A stretch of 64,000 bases of DNA, from contig NC_042997.1 of the NCBI RefSeq assembly GCF_006345805.1, positions 103,292,001 through 103,356,000 of the forward strand. Reading direction: 5' to 3'. Positions 4,544-64,000 of this stretch are shown in pieces; position 1 is the stretch's first letter; each line of letters begins with the position of its first letter. The notes under the pieces are model-generated. The model worked only from the letters and a program-made list of their open reading frames with translations, had not been told where the DNA came from and ran no database searches. Origin of the DNA: Octopus sinensis. Taxonomy: Eukaryota. The position numbers and the translations under genes are program-made.

Positions 4544-33925
<29,382 letters not shown>

Positions 33926-35851: not shown

Positions 35852-36044
35852 TATCCACCGAGTTCCCAGATACAACAGTTGGATTTGTAATATTTTTCCA
35901 CAACCTCTTCAATTCTCTACATCATTTGTATACTAAATCGGACCTTTTTATATAAAACTTTTGAATTTCAGGTACTTAATATACTTTATATATTGAGCTT
36001 TCAAGAGGTCGTATGTATTGTTGTTGTATTGTTGTTGTTGCTGT

Positions 36045-36350
36045 TTGTTGTCACCGCTCCTGTTCCTCGTCGTGCTGGACTGGGTTACCAGGATGGCCTA
36101 CGCTACCTCCGGGAAAGGTATTCAGTGGACACTGATGAACAAGCTGGAGGACTTGGACTACGCAGATGATCTCGCGCTACTGTCACATCGCCTGCAAGAC
36201 ATGCAAGATAAGGTAGACCACCTGACAGAAACTTCACGGCGAGTGGGCTTGAGGATCAGCCGGGAAAAGACAAAAGTGCTGCGTATCAACAACAAGCAGG
36301 AAGAGCCAATCACAATCGATGGGGCACCTGTAGAGGACGTTAAAGATAAA
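36045..36350 (+). mobile_element. RTE-clade LINE reverse transcriptase fragment
   Basis: LSPLLFLVVLDWV...LEDLDYADDLALLSH...VGLRISREKTK (YADD motif). Confidence 0.9.
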
Positions 36351-36361
36351 CACATCAACAC

Positions 36362-36429
<68 letters not shown>

Positions 36430-36431
<2 letters not shown>

Positions 36432-37690
36432 TAGATAGATAGATAGATAATGTTCTTTATTACCCACACAAGGCTTCTCACAGACGGGACAAATTACAAA
36501 GTAGAGCTTTTCTTGGTGGTGGGGTAGGCTTTCGATCAAAAGGGGTCGTAAAAAGGAAAGAAAAAAACGATCAATAGGGATCGTGTATCACAGAAATGTC
36601 ATGATGCAAAGTGCAAAAGGGGAAGCAGATAAGGCTTATCCATGGAAAGAAAAGCCTACGGAAAAGACCACGGTAACCTCGGTCAATAATGTCACATGTT
36701 AACACATTTATTTGCAAGTTGGTAACTCTCTATTTTAAATTTTTCCAGGTTCATAGGATTATGCTCAAGGTGGCTTCGTCATTCATACGTGCCATCCTTG
36801 CTACATTCACCCATCTTTTTTTGAAACATTCGCTAAACAAAACTTGCCTCTCTCCTCTCACTTTCCTTTTCAAGTGATACTTGAAGAAGTTGATGAGAGA
36901 TTGACCAGAGAGGAAAGTGCTTATCTCCAATCCTTTCAGACGCGTCCACCAGATACATTCTTTCGCCATAGTATGTTGAAAATAGCTCTTCCCGTTTGAA
37001 GGAAGGAGGCGTGATGATATTGACGATAGACGGCTGATAAACCGACTCGTCCCACACTTGACAGCCGTCGTTCGACATAAGCCCACAGGTCGGAAATGGT
37101 TGGACACTGCACGAGTGCGTGCAGAACAGTTTCGTCGCTCTGACCACATCTCGGGCAGGCCGGCCCCGTGTTTCTTGAGCCGTGTCTGTAGAGCTTATCC
37201 CGAACGGGTAGCACTTCTCGGTTGCACTGCCAGGCCAGGGATCTCTGGAAGTTGTCCATGGGTCCTGGCCCGAAAGTCGTCTTGAACAGGCGGATCAGGT
37301 ATTCCTCGTCGACGTCCATGTTCGCCCCGAGCTCGTCGTCGTACCTCCCCTCCACTAATCCCCTATAGAATGCTTTGGTTGTGTTGAAGTCGCTCAAGGT
37401 CAACCCGGGACGGCATAGTTGCTTGAGAACAACGCGACACTCGCGATGCCATTCGCCCTTCCTCGGTCTCTTTTTGATCCATGACTGCAGTTCGGTCATA
37501 AAGACGAGTTGCGGGAAAGCGTGCCTCACAAACGGTGACCACACCTGTTCACCATCGTCTACGTAGAGCCGGAGATGTCGCAGTCTCAGCGCGTGACTGT
37601 GCATCATCAACCACGGCATGACCAGTCCTCCTTTTAACGGGTGTTGACAGCACATGGATCGCCTGACCATCGGGGCGCATCCTTTCCACA
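36430..37690 (-). mobile_element. 3' fragment of a Tx1/L1-clade LINE with (ATCT)n tail
   Basis: ORF 36936-37691: LAWQCNREVLPVRDKLYRHG...CPRCGQSDETVLHALVQCP; AATAAA then (ATCT)n at the 3' end. Confidence 0.8.
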
Positions 37691-37838
37691 AGAAGTGGAA
37701 GAGAATGCGGGGCTTCTTTCAGCTTCTGTGTACCGAATCCACTCACAGCGCTTTGGTCGACCTGAGGTAATAATAGAAGACACCTGCCCAAGTAGCTACG
37801 CAGTGTGACCGAACCATGAGAGAGAGAGAGAGAGAAAC

Positions 37839-51908: not shown

Positions 51909-52462
51909 ATATATATATACATTTGTGGTGGGGAGGGTTCGCGAAAGCGTAAAATTTTTTTCGGAATTTAAATGTTTTATTGAAACAAAAAGAAACATAC
52001 TTTTATCACCGATATTGAACCATTTAGCACCAACTTCATTGGATAAGAAAGTTGTTAATCTGAGACATTATTTTCCTATTATAGAAAACTGTAAAAAAAT
52101 TTCGTCGTTAGATTCCGTTCAAGCTTGTCTATATTTGTCTTTAAACTCAAAGCTGAATTTCATCCTATGGATCTGGGTTGCATTGGAAAAATCTCACCTA
52201 CAATGAGAAAGAAACGTACAAAATGTGAACGAGTTACAATATGGCTTTGATACATTCATTTATTCATTCATTCTTCCTCTCTTTATTTTCTTATTTCTTT
52301 CTCTCGTTCTTTCTTTGTCTTATTTTTGTCAGTTTTATATGAAAGAGAAACCAATATTGGATAGGAATAAGAATGAAATTATCAATGCACGTGTGTATAT
52401 ATAGGATATCATATGTGTATGTATGTGTGCGTGTATGGATTCATATATATATACATAAATAC

Positions 52463-54238: not shown

Positions 54239-54268
54239 CTAACAACAACAGATTTCTTGCAGAAAGAA
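54239..54268 (-). CDS. Candidate terminal exon (FFLQEICCC*)
   Basis: Very strong polypyrimidine acceptor (tctctttctatctttctctag) and phase-0 fit; alternatives cannot be excluded. Confidence 0.3.
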   Translation of the reverse strand, partial: FFLQEICCC

Positions 54269-57200
54269 CTAGAGAAAGATAGAAAGAGACAAAAATATTG
54301 AGCAAAACATTAAACTGGTATTCTGTTTCATTGACACCGAAAGGATGAACGGTAGGGTTGCTCTTTGTACGATTTCAACTAAGGGTTCAGGGAGCCAGGA
54401 CTATTACTGAAAGACTACTATCTAGTTCTCTAAGTAATGAATACCAAAAGAACAAGAATCACGTAATCTCCGTAACCCCTGCTATTTTTATCATGCATTA
54501 ATTGATAATGTTCTGTACTCTCCTGACGTTTTACTCTAATCTAAATAGATATAGAAAAGAAGATAAATTGTGCGTTTGTGGACGTATGTATGCGATTGTG
54601 CTTTCTTCCTACATATCAATGTATATCTTCCTACATATCAGTGTAAATCGATACTTCGAGATATAGAAAGGTAATGTATGGTAATTGAGAAGGCAAAAAT
54701 TTGGTGATTTGATTAAATAAAGAACAATTAAAGAAGAAATTAGCATTGAGAGCCGATATTATCGATTAAGTTCCTTCGGTGTAGTGCTCCAACATGACCT
54801 CAGTCGGATAAGTGAAACCAGTCCAAGGATAAAAGCAATAAGCAAATATATTATAGCGCTGATATTATAGGGTGAAATGCGTAGCAGTATTTTGTCTGCC
54901 GTTACGTTCTGAGTTCAAATTCCGCTGAGGTCGACTTTGCCTTTTACCCTTTTGGGGTCGATAAATTAAGTACAAGTACCCAATGAGGTCGATATCATCG
55001 ACTTAATCCATCTGTCTGTCCTTGCTTGTCCCCTCAGTGTTTAGCCCCTTGTGGGTAGTAAAGAAATAGAATACACAGCAATTGCCTGCTAATTCAATCA
55101 GTAAGTAATGCAGGTGATTAAACAACTAAATACCTAAACACTTATTATCGCAATAATCAGTGATCTATTTACCAGATTACTATTACAGCATCGGTTATAA
55201 ATAAATACTTGCAGGGAATAATAACTGTATGTATTTAGTCTCACTGTGAAACTAAGGCTCATGAGAGCAAGCGCAGTAGATTTAAGCGGATCTCGATACA
55301 GTCATTTCGACCCCCATCCCAAGCAACGAGAAAGGCCCTTACAAGACCTAATTTTGCAGAGAGATGTGATACATTCCCATATGACTCCAAGTATTTATGC
55401 AATATTCTTTTCTACTCTAGGCACAAAGCCCGAAATTTTGGAGGAGGGAGCCAGTCGATTAGATCGATCCAGTACGCATCTGGCACTTAATTTGAACTCA
55501 CAACGTAACGGCAGACGAAATACCTATTTCTACTGCCCACAAGGGGCTAAGCACAGAGAGGACAAACAAGGACAGACAAACAGATTAAGTCGATTACATC
55601 GACTCCAGTGCGTAACTGGTACTTAATTTATCGACCCCGAAAGGATGAAAGGGAAAGTCGACCTCGGCGGAATTTGAACTCAGAACGTAACGTCAGACGA
55701 AATACGACAACGCATTTCACCCGGCGTGCTAACGTTTCTTCCTGCTCGCCGCCTTAATATCTATGCAATATTCATGCAATTCTGTTATTCTTCCTTCTAT
55801 TTCGAACGAAGGAAAATGATGAATAACGTTATATATATTTTCTAAGAATTCAGGTATTTGTCAATCTACTGAAAAGGCCTCTACCCTCTATATGTAGTTT
55901 TCTCAGTTCGCTGGCAATACGCTTCTGACAAAATTCAATTTACTTTCTTAAACTAGTTTCAAATTTTGGCATAAAGCCAGTAATTTTGGAGAAGGGGATA
56001 AATTGATTACATCAAACCAAGTATTCAGTTGGTACTTATTTTATCAACTCCGAAAGGATGAAAGACAAAGTTGACCTCGGTTGGATTTGGACTCAGAGCA
56101 TTTTACAGCTAAGCATTCTGCCACTAAGCATTTTGCCCGCTGTGCTAAAAATTCTTGCTGCTTTTTTACATTTCCTGTATTAAAACCAAAACTTTTATTG
56201 GGAGAATATAAGAAAGAAGTGGAAAATAAGATGTGATAAATTACATAATCTATTTCTCCTCGGAAATTTTCATATCCATAACCAGCACCAATTACCAAAC
56301 TATTTGACTTTCCTTCAATTGTTCCTGAAAAATGCAAAAGTAAATAACATAGATTAAATCCAATTCATTAAGATTCGTTCCAGTTTATAGGACTGTATAT
56401 ATCTTTATACACGAAACAAGATATTTTAAAGAGAGGACTTGAGGACTTGGGATACGCATTTCTTTATAGGAGGATTCTTGATAAATTAATGAAATGGATA
56501 AAACTGATTGGTAAATATCTCAACATTTGATCTCTTAACTGTGCTTGTTTCCTATAAAGAATAATTGATCGATTAGACAATGCTTATGTTTACAGATTGA
56601 TATGTAATTTTCTTTTTAAATGAATATTTTTTTCCTTTTCACACTTATTAATAACATCAAAAGAAATAATGACAACATTACCTGATACTGGTGTCTTCTG
56701 AACATAATCACCAACCTGGGCAATAAGTTGATTACCATCATATATCCACCCAACATTTTCCCAATCAGAACCCTAAAACACAAGGAATTGAAGGAATATA
56801 TAATAGTCAATTTACTGATTCATAAGGCACTGGGATGAAATAAAAATTCCTTTCCTATCAATATTATTGAAAAAAAAATTATTATTAAAAAAAGTAACAT
56901 AAAATGAAGTTAAATATCTATAAAAATTTCATTTTAAAACCGTTATGAACATTAAGTGTAAATAGACTCTTAAAATGGTTTCATATTTTAGTACATAGTC
57001 AATAGTTTGAAAAGACGAGGAGTCACCGATTACATCGATCTCAGCATTTGAATGGTTCTTTATTTTATCGATTCCGTAAGGATGAGAGGTAAAGTTAATT
57101 TCGTGGTATTTGTACTCAGAAACTGTTATAATTGCGGTTCCACAGCATGGATTCTGTCTCTGGGCTACTACACATAAAAAGGTAGAAGTAACATCCACAG

Positions 57201-57748
57201 TTATTTGCTTAGGTCATTTCACTTTTATCTTTTATCCATCAATCAATCAATCTATCCAAAAAAATCGACGGCTTAAAGATATAGAAACAGTTGAACATAA
57301 AAACCTGTAATGACAACTGAACCTTTATTTTTATTGTCTGTCTCAATATCCTATTATATTACATTTAAAATAATGTAACTGCTTTCCACGACTGCGCTCC
57401 CTTCAATCAACGCTCACTCTCCCTCCCTCCTTCTCTCCTTCTCTCCCCCTTTCTCTCTCTCTCTCTCTCTACCTCTCGCTTCAATTATACATGTTCCTGT
57501 ACTTAACATGTTGTACCCTCTCTACTTTCCTCTTCTTTCTCTTACCTCTCAGCACTAACACACTTCTCTCCTCCCCCTCCCCCTCCCTTTGCTGCACCCT
57601 TAAACTAACTAGCATCAAACATTCGACTTTAGCGTAATAACTATTATTTCTCCCTATTTTACTTTCTTAACACTTCCCTCTCCCTCTTCTCCCCTCACTT
57701 TTTGCCTCTCGGTTCAACTAGCTATGTGATAGCGTAACGCATTTACCA

Positions 57749-57786
<38 letters not shown>

Positions 57787-58499
57787 TTTTTGAGATTAAT
57801 ACAGGTTTATGCTATTTCTTTCTACGTATGTCTAACCATCGTGGTTGTTTGGAGCTCTGCATTGAATATTCCAAATCCAACTGGATACTTAAGCACAAAG
57901 GATTATCAGGGAACACTTTGTTGCATTGTCACAAAGAATTAAAATAAAAATCAAGTCATGCTTACGAATGCGTGTTGCTTTTATCATAATGTTAATATAC
58001 ATGAAGATACATATAGAAAATGTTTAACTTACTGAAGCTAAAATTTTGATTGATTTGTAACCTTGTTGTAGTGTTCGAATTCCGAATTCTATATAGCTTG
58101 ATGTGGCTACGATTAAAATGGATGGTGACTGCATGTTATTACTGTTGGTTATAAGAGCGTATGGTTTTATACCCAATTGGCTCTTTTCTAGGCGGTATCG
58201 AAGTGAAATGGCTATTGGAGGAATGGTATTTCCGAAATTGAATTTCGTAAGAAGTATTTGGCAATAACCATCGAACACTCCAGTGTAGTTATCTTCAGCT
58301 TCTGTGTTGTATCTAGTTGTAACGCCTTTTACGTGTAGGAATCGCGAATTGGTCTGGTTAAGACTTCGAAAGTTAATATTCACAGTTGGTTTGCAATCTT
58401 TTCAAAGTAAGAATTAAAAATAAGACAAAATGAAAGGATGAAAAACAAGAATTACGAAGGAATGTCTTGACATAGAGAAAACTTACATGCACACACACA

Positions 58500-58546
<47 letters not shown>

Positions 58547-61500
58547 CACTATATATATATATGTACATAAACACACACACACATATGTGTGCGTATATAT
58601 ATGTAGGTAGGTAGGTACGCGTGTATGTATGTATATATGTCATTATTCAGTTTTATTTCAAGATTTCTTGTCAGTAGAGGAAGAGCCGGTTTCAAGCCTA
58701 GATCCAGAGCTCCTTCATTGGAATTTCAACAACATCAACAGGGTATTTTTGAATGTATGTGCGTTTTTATGTGCAGTAGTTGGAGTCAGTGTATGTGCAG
58801 ACTTGTATATTTTGTTTTATGTATGTATTCTCATGCATATAGTTGCATGTCTAGACATGCACATATATACTTAAACGATAAACGTATAAAAAGTTTTACA
58901 AATATTTAGAGTTCCAATGATGGCTTGGATCTACAGTTTTCGAATCAGTCTTCTCCTATTTGGTTTTGAGACACCTAATTTCTCAAGATAGGTACTTAGG
59001 CAGTGTGTTATACATACCAGTGCCCCAATAATGACAGGTATAAACTCTGGGTAGAGTAACTAAATTTTTCGATAGTTCAGCGTAGGTAGTTCCTTTTTCA
59101 TTGGATCTTAGCCTTATGTTAACATTTGCTGGGCAGCTAATTTCTACTACTGTACAAAGTTTCTCTTCTTTGTCCCACATCAGTATGCCAGGTCCATTAT
59201 ATTCACATTTTATGAGGCATTCACTGGGACATTGCACTAGTAATCTAGATCAGTATGACTTCTACATACTGTGAGTTCTTAGTTCCATGTATGTATGTAT
59301 GTATGTATGTGTATGTATGTATGTATGTATGTATGTATGTATGTATGTATGTATGTATGTATGTATGTATGTATGTATCTACGTATGCATGTATGTATTC
59401 GGTTGTGCTGACTTCTACTTATAATCTAGTGACGAAAAGATGAAATATAGTTCAGAAATAAATGTTATTTACTCATGAGGTTCATGCCGAGAATCTGAAA
59501 TAGCATTTCTATTCGTTCTCGATATATTCTGTCGTGGTCGAGCGTGAATATCTAATCGCTGTTAGTCGTCATTATCAGAGAACATCTCCCTTGAGACGCT
59601 ATATGTTCATAACACACGTGATTCACCGATAAAACAAGACTTTGAGACACCACCTTCTAGAGTGTGCCCTCAGTCAAAGCTAACCCACCGGACCAATAAA
59701 TCTAACGAGATTACTGACTTTGAAAATGAATACAAAAGTTACTGCTTGTTACATAATATATTGGTCTAGGCATTTTTCCAGCACTAATTTAATGGCTTTA
59801 ATGCTTCAATCCCATGTATTCAAAGAAAGAACCCTGCTTTATATTCAATCCATAGAACTTGGGTACGCTTTAAAGCTACACCTCCCTTTTCTTTCTCTGT
59901 TATAGATATAGTCCCTGCTGCTTTCGACTACATATTCCCCCGTTTCAAGCCAACGAGGGAGACTTTACTTGCCTGCTTGACCTTGTGGAAGTAGCAGTAA
60001 AATTTCCCTCAAATCATACTCGACTTAAAAACAATGAATATATTGGTTAATACTGGCCAATTGACACTATGTCAACAAAAGACAAAATTATCGAGTATGG
60101 AGCATTTCCAATAATAGAATTGTTGAATCAGGACTTGCCGATAACAACAATAACTGACACGTTAATTACACAACTATAAACTTGTATCTAATCTTCTTCA
60201 CCTATGCTTTGTAAAGGTGAAACCTAAATCGCAGGACTCACTACTATACCTGTACATATTTTTTTTAGCGAGCACTCTAAAACTTTCTATGAATTAAAGA
60301 CTTGATGACAGTTATCAATTGTTATTTAGATCTATCAATTGAAAACATAATAAACTATTCAGATCTATCAATTGAAACCACAAACATTCTCATGAATCCT
60401 AACAAGACCACGGGGGTTACAGGGAAGAAATCATTAAAAATCCAAGTATTAGCGATAACAAGTCATGCCAACAAAGATAGTGATTAGATTATAAAATCAA
60501 CACATCTGATAGCGTGATTTACCTCCATTGTCTTAAGCAAATGACAGCCACCTAATATAGTTCATATTCTTTCACTGAGTGGCTAAAGGAAGTTCAATTT
60601 CAGCTAGCTCTAAGTCGGTACCACGAAGAGATAATGTTTACGGTTACTAATATAAATAGTACCATAAAACTGAAGAATGTCTCGTTAGCCTCGACAGGTT
60701 GTCGGGGCCTCGGAGATGGTAAAGGAAGGAAACTTACTCAATTGGTCACTTGAAGATAGGCCTTTCTGGGTGCCCTAATAACTCGATACATTAACCGAAT
60801 AACTTCTATCAGTAGGGGATAAATTAAAATTTGTATATAAAAAAAAGGATATGGAAAATAATATACCTAATCCTGTTGGTCGTACTGGTGAATCTGTAGC
60901 GGTTCTTGTACAGATGCATCTTGTATTGTCTAAACGTTCTCCATTCTGACAAATTGGAGCATTTGGACAGAAGACATTAACACATCTACAGTTAATGAGA
61001 TCAAGCTGCTCACCAGATGTACATACTGGTGGCGTAATGCACTGAGTGATACATCGGCATTGCACATAATCAAATCTTTGGTTTGCATTGCAGTTGCTTA
61101 CCACGGAACAACGACTTTCACAGCGACAAGTATCGTAGTTTATTCGTTCATCATTTCGGCAGGTTGGCAAATAATTACATTTATTTTCACATTGACATGT
61201 AATATCATTGAACCGTTGTTTATTGACGTCACAAATTCTCACAGTTTGGCATCGAGGCTCACAGCGACAGGTATCATAATTAACTTTTTCATTTGCTCTG
61301 CAGGAAATTGCATAACCGCATTTTTCTTCGCATTGGCATGTGATATCGTTGAACTTTTGAGAAATACCACAAGACTGTACGTTTCGACAACGAGGCTCAC
61401 AGCGACAGGTATCATAATTAACTTTTTCATTTGCTCTGCAGGAAACTGCATAACTGCATTTTTCTTCGCATTGGCATGTGATATCGTTGAACTTTTGAGA

Positions 61501-63675
61501 AATACCACAAGACTGTACGTTTCGACAACGAGGCTCACAGCGACAGGTATCATAATTAACTTTTTCATTTGCTCTGCAGGAAACTGCATAACTGCATTTT
61601 TCTTCGCATTGGCATGTGATATCGTTGAACTTTTGAGAAATACCACAAGACTGTACATTTTGACAACGAGGCTCACAACGACAGGTATCATAATTAACTT
61701 TTTCATTTGCTCTGCAGGAAACTGCATAACTGCATTTTTCTTCGCATTGGCATGTGATATCGTTGAACTTTTGAGAAATACCACAAGACTGTACATTTTG
61801 ACAACGAGGCTCACAACGACAGGTATCATAATTAACTTTTTCATTTGCTCTGCAGGAAACTGCATAACTGCATTTTTCTTCGCATTGGCATGTGATATCG
61901 TTGAACTTTTGAGAAATACCACAAGACTGTACGTTTCGACAACGAGGCTCACAACGACAGGTATCATAATTAACTTTTTCATTTGCTCTGCAGGAAACTG
62001 CATAACTGCATTTTTCTTCGCATTGGCATGTGATATCGTTGAACTTTTGAGAAATACCACAAGACTGTACGTTTCGACAACGAGGCTCACAGCGACAGGT
62101 ATCATAATTAAATTTTTCATTTGCTCTGCAGGAAACTGCATAACCGCATTTTTCTTCGCATTGGCATGTGATATCGTTGAACTTTTGAGAAATACCACAA
62201 GACTGTACGTTTCGACAACGAGGCTCACAACGACAGGTATCATAATTAACTCTTTCATTTGCGCTGCAGGAAACTGCATAACTGCATTTTTCTTCACATT
62301 GGCATGTGATATCGTTGAACTTTTGAGAAATACCACAAGACTGTACGTTTCGACAACGAGCCTCACAACGACAGGTATCATAATTTATCTTTTCATCATT
62401 ACGGCAATACAATGTTGGGCATTTGGAAACACATTGGCATGAAATCAAATCAAGAGTTTGCGAACCACTGCATGGCTGAGTAAAAGGACAAGCTTTTTGG
62501 CATCGGCAACTTGTAGTATTCAGTCGTTCATCAGCACCGCAGTTTGGTGGATAAGCACATTTCGGCAAACACCGACAATTTTGATAATCAAGGGTTTCAG
62601 AAATTTGGCATTTTGGTATGGGAAAGCAGCGTTGCGATGCTACAAATTAAAAATATATAATACCATTATTTATAATAGACTCAAACTGTGACATTTTATT
62701 TTTCTATAACAAAATTATACATATATTCGTTTCAATGTTTGACACTAGGCCAGCAATTTCGGTGCGGGTGTTAGTCTCAATCGGTACTTAATTTATTGAC
62801 CGTAGAAAGGATGAATGACAAATTCGACCCCGTAACAATTTGAACTCAGAAAGTAAGACTGGACGAAATATCACTAAGCATGCTAACGATTCTGCTAGCT
62901 CGCCATCTTATGCATACATTGAAATACATTTTGATACTGTGTCTGACTAAGTATCGGGCAAGTTTCATACTGGAAATGGTCCGGATTTCTGGATTTTACT
63001 TGTAGAGACAGTTGAAATATATACTTAAAATGTATGATAAACTATATAAAGTAAAGGACTAAACTGTATTCACAAGTCAAAATAATATACTTCTAAAGCA
63101 GGTTCTGCCTCATAATTATTAAACCACTTTAAAGTTTTTAAGTATATCATATTGCACCATGTATACGGTATAATGCTTATAGGATGAAAATTAATCGAAG
63201 ACAAATTTAATAGATACAGGTACAAATTAATACACTTCTAAAACAGAGTGTTTAATCTTTTTCTATCTACTTAAAATGTAAACAACAAAGCTATTTTTAA
63301 CAAACCGTATGCAAATTGACTAACAAAGCAGCTGCACGGCAAACTAGGGCTGGCGCGTGAAATTCAAAACTAGCTAATTTCAAAAATAGTCGGGTTTTGG
63401 TAATTCCGGATGTCTGGAAGCCGGATAAGAGGTCGATACTGTATTACATTTAATTTAGAGACCCAAAAATAACTTACATGGAGTAGTCATACCATAGGGT
63501 GTACATTCTCGGGAATCAAGGCAAGATCCTAACATCGAATGATAAGTTCCTGAAGCTTTCAGGTCTGCACAAGGTTGAATAGAAGTTGTTATTCCATAGC
63601 TGCAGACTCCCCACATTAAACATGATGTAGAATCTGTTTGATAGACGGCAGGATTTCCCAGTGATTTGCATTTAT
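54239..63675 (-). CDS. Pif/LamG3-like extracellular matrix protein: ChtBD2 + Cys-rich repeat rod + laminin-G/ConA-like domain (5' end outside window)
   Basis: Exons 63675-63478, 62639-60867, 58397-58033, 56772-56682, 56324-56245 join in frame with canonical GT-AG sites and consistent phases (1-1, 1-1, 1-0, 0-1, 1-0). Terminal exon is uncertain. Confidence 0.85.
54880..55070 (+). mobile_element. SINE-A copy
   Basis: Family A core. Confidence 0.85.
55420..55755 (-). mobile_element. SINE-A copy plus partial copy
   Basis: Family A core, reverse strand. Confidence 0.85.
56245..56324 (-). CDS. Laminin-G domain exon 3 (GTIEGKSNSLVIGAGYGYENFRGEIDY)
   Basis: catttttcag acceptor, TAT|gtaatt donor; L-x-IG...F-x-G-x-ID motif of LamG3 domains. 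Confidence 0.87.
56682..56772 (-). CDS. Laminin-G domain exon 2 (GSDWENVGWIYDGNQLIAQVGDYVQKTPVS)
   Basis: tgtgttttag acceptor, G|gtaatg donor; W-x2-V-x3-YDG-x2-L motif of LamG/ConA folds. Confidence 0.85.
58033..58397 (-). CDS. Laminin-G/ConA-like domain exon 1 (DCKPTVNINF...VFDGYCQILL...YALITNSN...PSILIV...EFGIRT)
   Basis: Overlaps ORF 58024-58383; donor TCA|gtaagt; pattern matches the C-terminal LamG-like domain of molluscan Pif-like proteins as I recall it. Confidence 0.8.
58900..59260 (-). mobile_element. Fragment of an RLE-endonuclease non-LTR retrotransposon (R2/NeSL/R4-like)
   Basis: NGPGILMWDKEEKLCTVVEISCPANVNI...EK...Y, a degenerate PD-(D/E)xK RLE pattern. Confidence 0.7.
60867..62639 (-). 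CDS. 1773-nt exon encoding 25 Cys-rich repeats of about 23 aa (C-x5-C-x10-C-x-C-x3)
   Basis: Overlaps ORF 60775-62568; acceptor taatttgtag at 62640, donor TTAG|gtatat; spacing resembles Balbiani ring protein 3 / VEGF-C silk-homology repeats. Confidence 0.92.
61253..62356 (-). repeat. Coding tandem repeat, 138-bp unit x8 (two 69-bp half-units)
   Basis: cgaggctcac recurs at 61253, 61391, 61529 etc.; 46-aa unit CRNVQSCGISQKFNDITCQCEEKCSYAVSCRANEKVNYDTCRCEPR. Confidence 0.97.
62745..62910 (-). mobile_element. Degraded SINE-A copy
   Basis: gaaaggatg...tttgaactcag...gctaacgattctgctagctcgcc. Confidence 0.7.
63478..63675 (-). CDS. Exon encoding a chitin-binding type-2 (peritrophin-A/CBM14-like) domain
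   Basis: DKCKSLGNPAVYQTDSTSCLMWGVCSYGITTSIQPCADLKASGTYHSMLGSCLDSRECTPYGMTTP: six Cys, C-x15-C-x5-C-x10-C-x15-C-x5-C; ttttctttcag acceptor, T|gtaagt donor. Confidence 0.85.
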
Positions 63676-63734
63676 CTGAAAGAAAAGATACATTAAAATA
63701 TCAAGGATAACTTTGCATTTGTAAATATATACTC

Positions 63735-64000
63735 TTTTACTCTTTACTCTTTTACTTGTTTCAGTCATTTGACTGCGGCCACGCTGGAGCACCGCCTTTA
63801 ATCGAGCTACTCGACCCCGGGACTTATTCTTTTGCAAGCCCAGTACTTATTCTATCGGTCTCTTTTGCCGAACCGCTAAGTTACGGGAACATAAACATAC
63901 CAGCATCGGTTGTCAAGCAATGCTAGAGGGACAAACACAGACACACAAACACACACACGCATATATATATATATATATATACGACGGGCTTCTTTCAGTT
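63735..64000 (-). mobile_element. SINE-B copy running off the window end
   Basis: (ctctttta)n tail, ggagcaccgcc, gccgaaccgctaag core. Confidence 0.9.

Follow-up and report, generated by a model that had tools for sequence, protein, structure and literature searches.

Pif, LamG3 and BMSP are central to models of how chitin-based hard parts are organised in molluscs, and the field has asked why shell-less octopods retain genes of this kind. Pif-like proteins share with the octopod protein described here a signal peptide, a CBM_14 domain followed by a second cysteine domain, and a ConA/LamG-like C-terminal domain; in cephalopods, a LamG3-type architecture without VWA has been described. Its other close likeness is to the BR3P/CXCXC family (PF03128; Chironomus Balbiani ring 3 and the VEGF-C/D silk-homology domain), with which it has tandem C-X10-C-X-C-X3-C units in common, the published BR3P motif being C-X10-C-X-C-X(1,3)-C (PMC10328876).

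Here we describe a transcribed octopus gene, partly contained in a 64,000-nt stretch of DNA (the window), whose product is a ~110 kDa, presumably secreted protein of the molluscan Pif/LamG3 shell-matrix family. Its domains run in the order signal peptide, polar heptads, CBM_14, a six-cysteine domain (domain 2), 25 units of BR3P/CXCXC type and a ConA/LamG-like domain. We favour, with a probability of roughly 0.55, an octopod-restricted Pif/LamG3/BMSP paralogue whose product would act as a chitin-anchored, disulfide-rich spacer or cross-linker of a non-mineral extracellular structure. The literature searched held no description of CXCXC repeats in a chitin-binding architecture, and mentioned neither the orthologue accessions given below nor BR3-like proteins in cephalopods. 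The first-pass annotation, made from the window alone, had supposed the combination undescribed; this stands for the literature searched, but NCBI already predicts the orthologues, as 'balbiani ring protein 3-like'.

A nine-exon gene with spliced transcripts

The gene lies on the minus strand, spans roughly 29 kb and encodes a full protein of 998 aa in nine coding exons. The locus in the window comprises its 3′ two thirds; the start lies about 17.5 kb past the window end, and the three additional coding exons were located via the Octopus bimaculoides orthologue.

5-17.5 kb beyond the window end, minus strand: three exons, encoding the signal peptide with GGDQTxN repeats, a 21-nt mini-exon, and the CBM_14 domain
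63478..63675, minus strand: coding exon 4 of 9, six-Cys domain 2 (C-x15-C-x5-C-x10-C-x15-C-x5-C), placed by AG/GT signals and frame
60867..62639, minus strand: coding exon 5, a single open reading frame with 25 Cys units and a 14-aa linker to the C-terminal domain
61253..62396, minus strand: homogenised core of the array; by TRF a 138-nt (46-aa, two-unit) repeat in 8.3 copies with 97% matches
58033..58397, minus strand: coding exon 6, which encodes the ConA/LamG-like C-terminal domain up to two thirds of its length and is joined at either end in RNA contigs
56682..56772, minus strand: coding exon 7, middle of the C-terminal domain, from RNA joints 58033/56772 and 56682/56324 and from tblastn with the O. 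bimaculoides orthologue
56245..56324, minus strand: coding exon 8, ending ...FRGEIDY, donor GTAATT
51943..52197, minus strand: last exon, coding at 52197-52165 (VRFFQCNPDP, stop), then about 220 nt of 3′ UTR; 3′ end approximate

The four junctions first proposed (63478/62639, 60867/58397, 58033/56772 and 56682/56324) all pair a GT donor with an AG acceptor and keep one frame open. Contigs from four RNA-like runs, drawn from four studies, skip 58398-60866, 56773-58032 and 56325-56681 exactly, with CT..AC ends, and cover 60867-61282 joined to 58397, linking the repeat exon to the C-terminal domain as had been predicted. Three of the four junctions are thus seen in spliced RNA, and 63478/62639 is assigned from splice signals, frame and orthologues, exon 63478..63675 being flanked by phase 1 introns on both sides. 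Exon 6 begins one residue ahead of the conserved first cysteine (DCKPT...) and matches a profile of its relatives at E 2e-22; the position and phase of its intron are those of a paralogue at C8:26.43 Mb in the same genome.

The initial five-exon model was truncated at both ends. Its fifth exon reads through the donor at 56245: the contigs' loose end at 56243 runs on, in four of four runs, into the sequence of the exon at 52197, outside 54239-63675, and 54239-56244 is intron. Both the 255-nt length of this loose end and an AATAAA at 51981 agree with a last exon of 51943..52197, whose coding part matches the C-terminus of the O. bimaculoides orthologue (P0001) at 100% and supplies a cysteine that is invariant in 30 of 30 aligned C-terminal domains. 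RNA-like runs under the same species label carry either 70-80% of the repeat-exon words or none, indicating that expression is not ubiquitous.

Globular domains and family placement

The same architecture recurs in O. bimaculoides and Argonauta hians, and orthologues were found in those two only. Both are annotated as 'balbiani ring protein 3-like' (XP_014775857.1, 776 aa, in O. bimaculoides; an 882-aa partial protein in A. hians), named for their repeats alone, with the Pif kinship unannotated. They have the domain order and exon-encoded ends found here. Between Octopus and Argonauta the globular domains are strongly conserved (95% for O. bimaculoides, 80% for A. hians) and the unit number varies, with 15 and 19 units, respectively, against 25 in this gene.

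The C-terminal domain carries the family assignment. Among 1.8 billion representative sequences, phmmer aligned roughly residues 35-185 of its 187 with exclusively molluscan proteins of the PIF, PIF-like and BMSP-like kinds, at E values between 1e-13 and 1e-4; the nearest full-length relatives are likewise molluscan CBM_14 proteins, with or without VWA, in which CBM_14 lies directly upstream of the domain. Named examples include A. hians 'protein PIF-like' (GAB1600178.1, P0049), Patella 'protein PIF' (XP_050408812.1), Lottia BMSP-like shell protein 26 (B3A0P4) and a chiton PIF-like protein (XP_064612656.1), which bears out the family call made from the window sequence. Identity to the Pif-like domains is 21-30% over full length with the C.P...C.P terminal cysteines kept, the terminal cysteines and G/N/S positions of the alignment are invariant, and the intron ahead of the domain occupies the same position as in octopus paralogues. 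Pfam found no VWA in either orthologue (P0001, P0002), which excludes Pif and BMSP sensu stricto and accords with the LamG3 type of cephalopods. The LamG-domain phylogeny that had been proposed, a maximum-likelihood tree of 38 C-terminal domains without the reference Pinctada Pif, returned no supported sister: the octopod gene has a stem of length 1.6 and falls, together with the Lottia BMSP-like protein, Mytilus VWA proteins and several octopus paralogues, into a group whose branching is not resolved. The gene is best explained as a divergent, octopod-restricted paralogue within the Pif/LamG3/BMSP matrix-protein family.

Family membership and the presence of an orthologue in A. hians could also point to a biomineral matrix protein like Pif/LamG3 proper, acting in calcified or phosphatic structures such as statoliths, stylets or the argonaut eggcase, and LamG3 has been reported both from the eggcase of A. 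hians and from the shell of Nautilus. We consider this improbable. As described, LamG3 of the eggcase has three ChtBD2 and a Laminin_G3 but lacks a repeat array, which agrees with the distinct paralogue at C8:26.43 Mb, the counterpart of the A. hians PIF-like protein P0049 listed above; moreover, the mature octopod protein, with a pI of about 8, lacks any acidic or Asp-rich stretch, and the gene is under constraint in shell-less Octopus.

An AF2 model of the C-terminal domain, built on the 95% identical O. bimaculoides version, reached pLDDT 90.5 and pTM 0.89. VIA-align superposed 140-178 residues on jelly-rolls of the LG, LNS, pentraxin, CBM40 and clostridial HCN types at Z 13-17, the LG/LNS-type folds including agrin, neurexin and laminin LG, with AbnA domain 4 also among the nearest solved relatives; Foldseek gave E about 1e-7. 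The model confidently predicts a ConA/LamG jelly-roll. The LamG/ConA assignment made at the outset therefore holds for fold and for homology to PIF/BMSP-like proteins, but not by Pfam: on the orthologues' contiguous sequences the Laminin_G_3 score was 23.4 bits for O. bimaculoides (P0001) and 14.7 bits for P0002, short of the cutoff of 27.6, below which several Pif-like relatives also fall, and the LamG pieces on single exons gave no Pfam match. A sequence search of the PDB with the C-terminal profile returned nothing. Toxin kinship, considered for the matches to botulinum/tetanus HCN, was rejected, as identity is 9-13% and reflects just the common ConA-like jelly-roll. We propose that an N-to-C disulfide staples the domain, with one cysteine of the protein's 115 left over.

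These folds raise the further reading of a soluble pattern-recognition or ECM-binding lectin, in which CBM_14 and the ConA-like domain would bind microbial chitin or glycans and the repeats would bind heparan-type matrix like VEGF-C/VEGF-A tails. CBM40, AbnA domain 4 and pentraxins among the nearest solved folds speak for it, as does ECM binding by the silk-homology and heparin-binding domains of VEGFs (PMC10328876). It nevertheless has little probability: the C-terminal domain has no sequence-level kinship to any lectin of known specificity, its sequence relatives are all matrix-type Pif-like proteins, and the repeat array is near neutral in charge, not strongly basic.

At the other end of the protein, a von Heijne-type N-terminus, by which secretion is predicted, is followed by six polar GGDQT(Q/R)N heptads. 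CBM_14 scores 39.1 bits in the off-window exon of this genome (L004:6281-6472; Pfam cutoff 22.1) and 40.5 bits in the O. bimaculoides orthologue (P0001). The ChtBD2 originally placed within the window is a different domain: its exon has six-Cys, ChtBD2-like spacing and no Pfam match of its own, so that the Pfam-recognised chitin-binding domain is the one beyond the window. Domain 2 is probably a divergent ChtBD2, judging from its spacing and place in the protein. Its position corresponds to the second Pfam CBM_14 in 21 of 22 relatives, and its exon shares 94-95% identity with O. bimaculoides and 82% with A. hians. Alignment by hhalign to the CBM_14 #1 and #2 alignments was weak (E 0.02-0.15, probability 0.4-2.3%); an AF2 model from three sequences had low confidence (pLDDT 50) and was hence too poor for a fold search. 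Looking domain 2 up in the ESM atlas gave no usable match, and a region search returned the two orthologues and nothing else.

The cysteine-repeat array and its origin

Listing the units of exon 60867-62639 gave the 25 tandem C-x5-C-x10-C-x-C-x3 repeats and 100 cysteines previously noted. Units are 22-24 aa long, three of the 25 deviating from the spacing by one residue, and C-x10-C-x-C is followed by x3-4 and a cysteine in 24 units; the remaining unit has x11. The count of 25 is that of the assembly, since RNA contigs collapse the array. Eight 138-nt units at its centre differ from one another at 0-4 nt.

The BR3-type likeness was borne out, in that the repeats fit the published motif. Pfam CXCXC reached 19.7 bits on 62200-62637 and 14.0 on the whole exon (cutoff 15), and it was not reported on the full-length orthologues. 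Orthologues aside, the repeat exon comes closest to a CXCXC protein (P0003, E 2e-6), and a PDB search by sequence found no match for the repeats. Such a motif, an array that accounts for 58% of the mature protein and for 100 of its 115 cysteines, the odd cysteine count, and RNA contig depth that is high in just some of the runs would suit a silk- or cement-like secretory fibre protein like Chironomus BR3. On this account the array would polymerise through intermolecular disulfides in threads, mucus, or an egg stalk or egg coat, with CBM_14 and LamG as accessories. We regard it as unlikely, though less so than the biomineral and lectin readings: the best-conserved parts are the globular ends, which belong to a chitin-matrix family, the resemblance to BR3 is confined to cysteine spacing, and a search of the same genome found no second good CXCXC array. 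Matches at C13:16.68-16.73 Mb, tried as a donor array, were rejected as a 69-nt satellite with open frames and not a related gene.

We return to the Pif-family paralogue. A single C-x10-C-x-C lies 10-25 aa before the first cysteine of the C-terminal domain in 27 of 27 relatives and in three paralogues of the same genome, the canonical PIF-like paralogue having one such unit at the array position. The last octopod unit occupies exactly this place, and exon order and intron phase are identical. Because the array stands at the site of the C-x10-C-x-C-ending module of relatives and paralogues, it replaced or grew out of that module. Cysteines aside, the octopod units went unrecognised by a PSSM and an HMM built from the relatives' module 3, which gave them 2 bits at most (shuffle p above 0.05 in most cases) and rated a generic CXCXC protein higher; by Pfam, the relatives' module is a weak CBM_14 match and not a CXCXC one. 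The case for in-situ amplification is consequently one of position, spacing and exon order. We tentatively raise the possibility that the array was not shuffled from a BR3/VEGF-C-type gene but tandem-amplified in place from the C-x10-C-x-C half of the gene's own third ChtBD2-like module, an independent, octopod-specific 'silk-homology'-type origin, its product being structural in an octopod-specific chitinous tissue, for example the sucker lining.

Proposed role and comparison with known proteins

In our working model, a chitin-depositing epithelium would secrete the protein, its N-terminal domain or domains would bind chitin fibrils, and the lectin-like C-terminal domain may bind a second matrix component, either a glycan or another protein; both binding activities are predicted. 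The roughly 65-kDa disulfide-locked array, assumed here to be rod-shaped, would serve as a long spacer that resists proteases and heat, with a length set through unequal crossing-over at 15-25 units between species, and the odd cysteine may permit covalent pairing. Chitin layers of a non-mineral extracellular structure would thereby be cross-linked or spaced.

The gene illustrates one lineage-specific fate within this family, in which the chitin-binding and lectin-like ends stay strongly constrained and a middle module has become a long, copy-number-variable cysteine array. As a component of the matrix in chitinous structures of octopods it is a concrete candidate, and it offers, with 1, 15, 19 and 25 units, a natural series for the effect of spacer length on a chitin composite. 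The annotation is also corrected, as the label 'Balbiani ring protein 3-like' masks kinship with the Pif family.

Peritrophin and cuticle proteins, which join CBM_14 to a long spacer, follow the same chitin-anchor-plus-linker logic as secreted proteins of a matrix. The spacer is usually a mucin-like tract of Ser/Thr/Pro where the octopod protein has disulfide-rich units, and these proteins are not known to carry a ConA/LamG end domain. Relative to BR3P, the octopod units have an additional cysteine, giving C-x5-C, and a strict 23-aa period; the likeness to BR3/VEGF is essentially one of cysteine spacing between proteins with unrelated flanking domains, and does not imply descent from BR3. Compared with Pif-like proteins, the octopod protein is not acidic, carries the N-terminal GGDQTxN heptad tract, has lost the inner disulfide of the C-terminal domain (DC...C.LQIG) and, unlike their CBM_14 #2, has a domain 2 beyond HMM recognition; where they have a third ChtBD2-like module with one C-x10-C-x-C, the octopod gene has 15-25 four-cysteine units.

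Gene structure and transcription

The window corresponds to C1:103292001-103356000 of the 2.72-Gb genome, and the gene is encoded on its minus strand. The ORF list held a single 597-aa ORF at 60775-62568 and elsewhere only fragments, in line with the first-pass annotation, in which the ORF track covered only the repeat exon and part of one LamG exon. We searched the window and a further 29 kb of upstream sequence by tblastn with the Octopus bimaculoides orthologue (P0001) and inspected the splice sites, which gave nine coding exons with GT-AG at every junction.

Coding exons of the Pif/LamG3-like gene (positions above 64000 continue the window numbering)
81562-81322, minus strand: exon 1, Met, signal-peptide-like N-terminus and six GGDQT(Q/R)N heptads
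80108-80088, minus strand: exon 2, 21-nt mini-exon, VGDGLPP
69474-69280, minus strand: exon 3, CBM_14
63675-63478, minus strand: exon 4, six-Cys domain 2
62639-60867, minus strand: exon 5, repeat array
58397-58033, minus strand: exon 6, C-terminal domain, first part
56772-56682, minus strand: exon 7, C-terminal domain, middle
56324-56245, minus strand: exon 8, C-terminal domain, ending ...FRGEIDY
52197-52165, minus strand: exon 9, VRFFQCNPDP and stop

The predicted product has 998 aa with 115 Cys, and its mature form is ~110 kDa with a pI of ~8. This model replaces the five exons proposed earlier: exons 1-3 lie beyond the window end, and the former fifth exon had run past the donor GTAATT at 56245, the true last exon (at 52197) being 4 kb on and outside the annotated span of 54239-63675.

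The repeat exon, whole or partial, was present in 20 sequencing runs from nine studies, 14 of which, drawn from five studies, are small (17-110 Mb assemblies) and presumably RNA; it was absent from four further RNA-like runs with the same species label. Transcription of the gene is non-ubiquitous. When contigs from four runs (four studies) were aligned to 56200-62199, one contig per run spanned 60867|58397, 58033|56772 and 56682|56324 with CT..AC ends in all four, and past 56245 the contigs of all four carried on into the 52197 exon. These joints and this continuation identify the four runs as RNA. All four junctions named in the earlier model have AG/GT ends and keep one open frame, their introns being phase 1 in all cases but one; the contig joints establish three of them as real, the exception being 63478/62639, and the passage from 56245 into the 52197 exon does the same for the corrected 3′ end. 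A 3′UTR of ~220 nt fits the 255-nt contig tail and an AATAAA at 51981. Fixed single-base differences at 58168, 61017 and 61150, found in contigs of organism-B runs and absent from organism-A runs, indicate that two or more closely related species or strains transcribe the gene.

Many short RNA-like contigs (depth 100-500) also map to 58600-59000, within the intron that separates exon 5 from exon 6; their ends are microsatellite-like, they contain small internal joints, and they appear to derive from repeats rather than from an exon of the gene. Upstream of exon 4, the adjacent intron contains, at 63720-64000, a ~270-nt interspersed SINE-like repeat with at least 40 genome copies at 91-97% identity. 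Positions 1-52000 hold only transposon remnants and long microsatellites, with no second gene evident there downstream of the gene studied.

Transposon-related features
25906-26481 and 12064-12396: mariner-like transposase
7-528 and 36018-37691: reverse-transcriptase-like ORFs

Domains of the predicted protein

A bona fide CBM_14 module is encoded by exon 3 (39.1 bits; cutoff 22.1), beyond the window, whereas domain 2, the in-window domain previously read as ChtBD2, has no Pfam match. Profile-profile comparison of domain 2 gave only a short in-register match around C-x2-W-x2-C (E 0.02-0.15), and its AF2 model (pLDDT 50) was unusable. Domain 2 directly follows the first CBM_14; at this position 21 of 22 Pif-like relatives show a second CBM_14 that Pfam recognises and whose cysteine spacing is nearly the same. 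No other part of the protein is as well conserved between Octopus and Argonauta. We regard domain 2 as a putative diverged ChtBD2.

As first proposed, exon 5 encodes 25 consecutive C-x5-C-x10-C-x-C-x3 units with 100 Cys, the spacing being off by one residue in three units. The array centre is a 138-nt two-unit repeat (8.3 copies, 97%) whose eight central copies differ from one another by just 0-4 nt; the copy number of 25 is an assembly figure, the central repeats being collapsed in RNA contigs. Unit number varies from 25 here to 15 in O. bimaculoides and 19 in Argonauta hians. The suggested likeness to BR3 repeats stands by motif, as the octopod units match the BR3P definition (PMC10328876); Pfam CXCXC exceeds its cutoff of 15 over the first 146 residues (19.7) but not over the whole exon (14.0).

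An exhaustive phmmer search with the C-terminal domain against 1.8 billion representatives returned 82 matches. Among those checked, the matches covering most of the domain are molluscan, with CBM_14 just upstream and often VWA, Sushi or TSP1; several are named protein PIF, PIF-like or BMSP-like shell protein, which bears out the Pif/LamG3-family assignment. In a 30-sequence alignment, G, N and S are invariant at certain positions and two cysteines form a terminal pair, C.P...C.P; the second of these is encoded by exon 9, which the earlier model lacked. AF2 on this alignment, run for the O. bimaculoides domain (95% identical; the O. sinensis domain is split over four exons), gave an all-beta sandwich (pLDDT 90.5, pTM 0.89). 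Foldseek and VIA-align placed the model in the ConA-like/LamG superfamily (Z 13-17), with matches to laminin, agrin and neurexin LG domains, pentraxins, CBM40 and an arabinanase sugar-binding domain, and also to the jelly-roll subdomain of clostridial neurotoxin binding regions, for this model a likeness of fold class only. The LamG/ConA-like reading is thus upheld by modelled fold, although Pfam Laminin_G_3 falls below its cutoff (23.4 against 27.6). An inner Cys pair (DC...C.LQIG) present in many aligned relatives is lost from the octopod domain and Cys855 is gained, at a position occupied by Ser in relatives (the residues concerned are 811, 855 and 994 of the 998-aa protein); with this gain the total of 115 Cys is odd, and one thiol is a candidate to remain free.

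Family position and origin of the array

Searching with the repeat exon matched two orthologues: P0001 (XP_014775857.1, 'balbiani ring protein 3-like isoform X2', 776 aa) and the A. hians protein P0002 (also 'balbiani ring protein 3-like', 882 aa). None turned up outside Octopus and Argonauta when the repeat exon, domain 2 and the C-terminal domain served as queries (proteins of 325-1358 aa, representatives merged above 50% identity). In the tree, the three sequences form a 100/100 clade on a long stem, without a supported sister. With a C-terminal-domain profile, nine or more additional loci were detected in the genome, on C8, C14, C17 and C3, and C14 carries a cluster of four or five paralogous loci at 44.8-45.1 Mb. 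At all these loci a phase-1 exon begins one residue ahead of the first Cys, and the intron before the LamG-like domain has a common position.

In all 27 aligned relatives, C-x10-C-x-C occurs 10-25 residues before the domain's first Cys (one copy in 26, two in one), and the last octopod unit (CQNGERLDNTRCIC) occupies the same position. Three paralogues in this genome have a single such unit in the exon directly before the first LamG exon, the place of the 25-unit exon. Growth of the array from this resident module would fit position, cysteine spacing, exon order and intron phase. The sequence itself does not support growth in place: an HMM and PSSM of the relatives' module gave no recognition of octopod units beyond the cysteines, and Pfam reads that module as a weak CBM_14 half, not CXCXC. 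As for a possible donor, the genome contains no other convincing CXCXC array. Matches on C13 were rejected as a donor: C13:16681000-16732000 is a ~50-kb tract in which a 69-nt unit is tandemly repeated, with long open frames, a 23-aa period and C-x5-C, at ~24% identity to the repeat exon, and looks like a satellite of chance-equal period, not a related gene. The candidate origins are in-place amplification and the exchange of the resident module for a shuffled phase-1 exon.

Proposed role and relation to known proteins

The established features are a signal-peptide-like N-terminus, a chitin-binding module, a long, disulfide-rich array of variable copy number and a lectin-fold, Pif-family end domain, with purifying selection acting on the globular parts. 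Such a protein would anchor to chitin, with the array as a stiff, covalently locked spacer and the C-terminal domain holding a second matrix component; molecules may pair via the odd cysteine, probably C855. Its neutral-to-basic charge and lack of acidic tracts favor a non-mineral chitin matrix over a crystal-nucleating role, and candidate structures include beak, radula, sucker lining, stylet, gut cuticle or egg envelope.

We found no description of this domain combination or its Pif-family relation in the searchable literature; prior knowledge covers the family, the repeat type and the predicted orthologues. The canonical cephalopod LamG3/Pif-like type, for which the literature gives three ChtBD2 and a Laminin_G3, is represented instead at C8:26.43 Mb (C8:26419951-26431780), where a counterpart of the A. 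hians 'protein PIF-like' has one exon each for a first CBM_14, a second CBM_14 and a third Cys module ending CAPGSAFDKSMCSC, making the gene studied here a separate paralogue.
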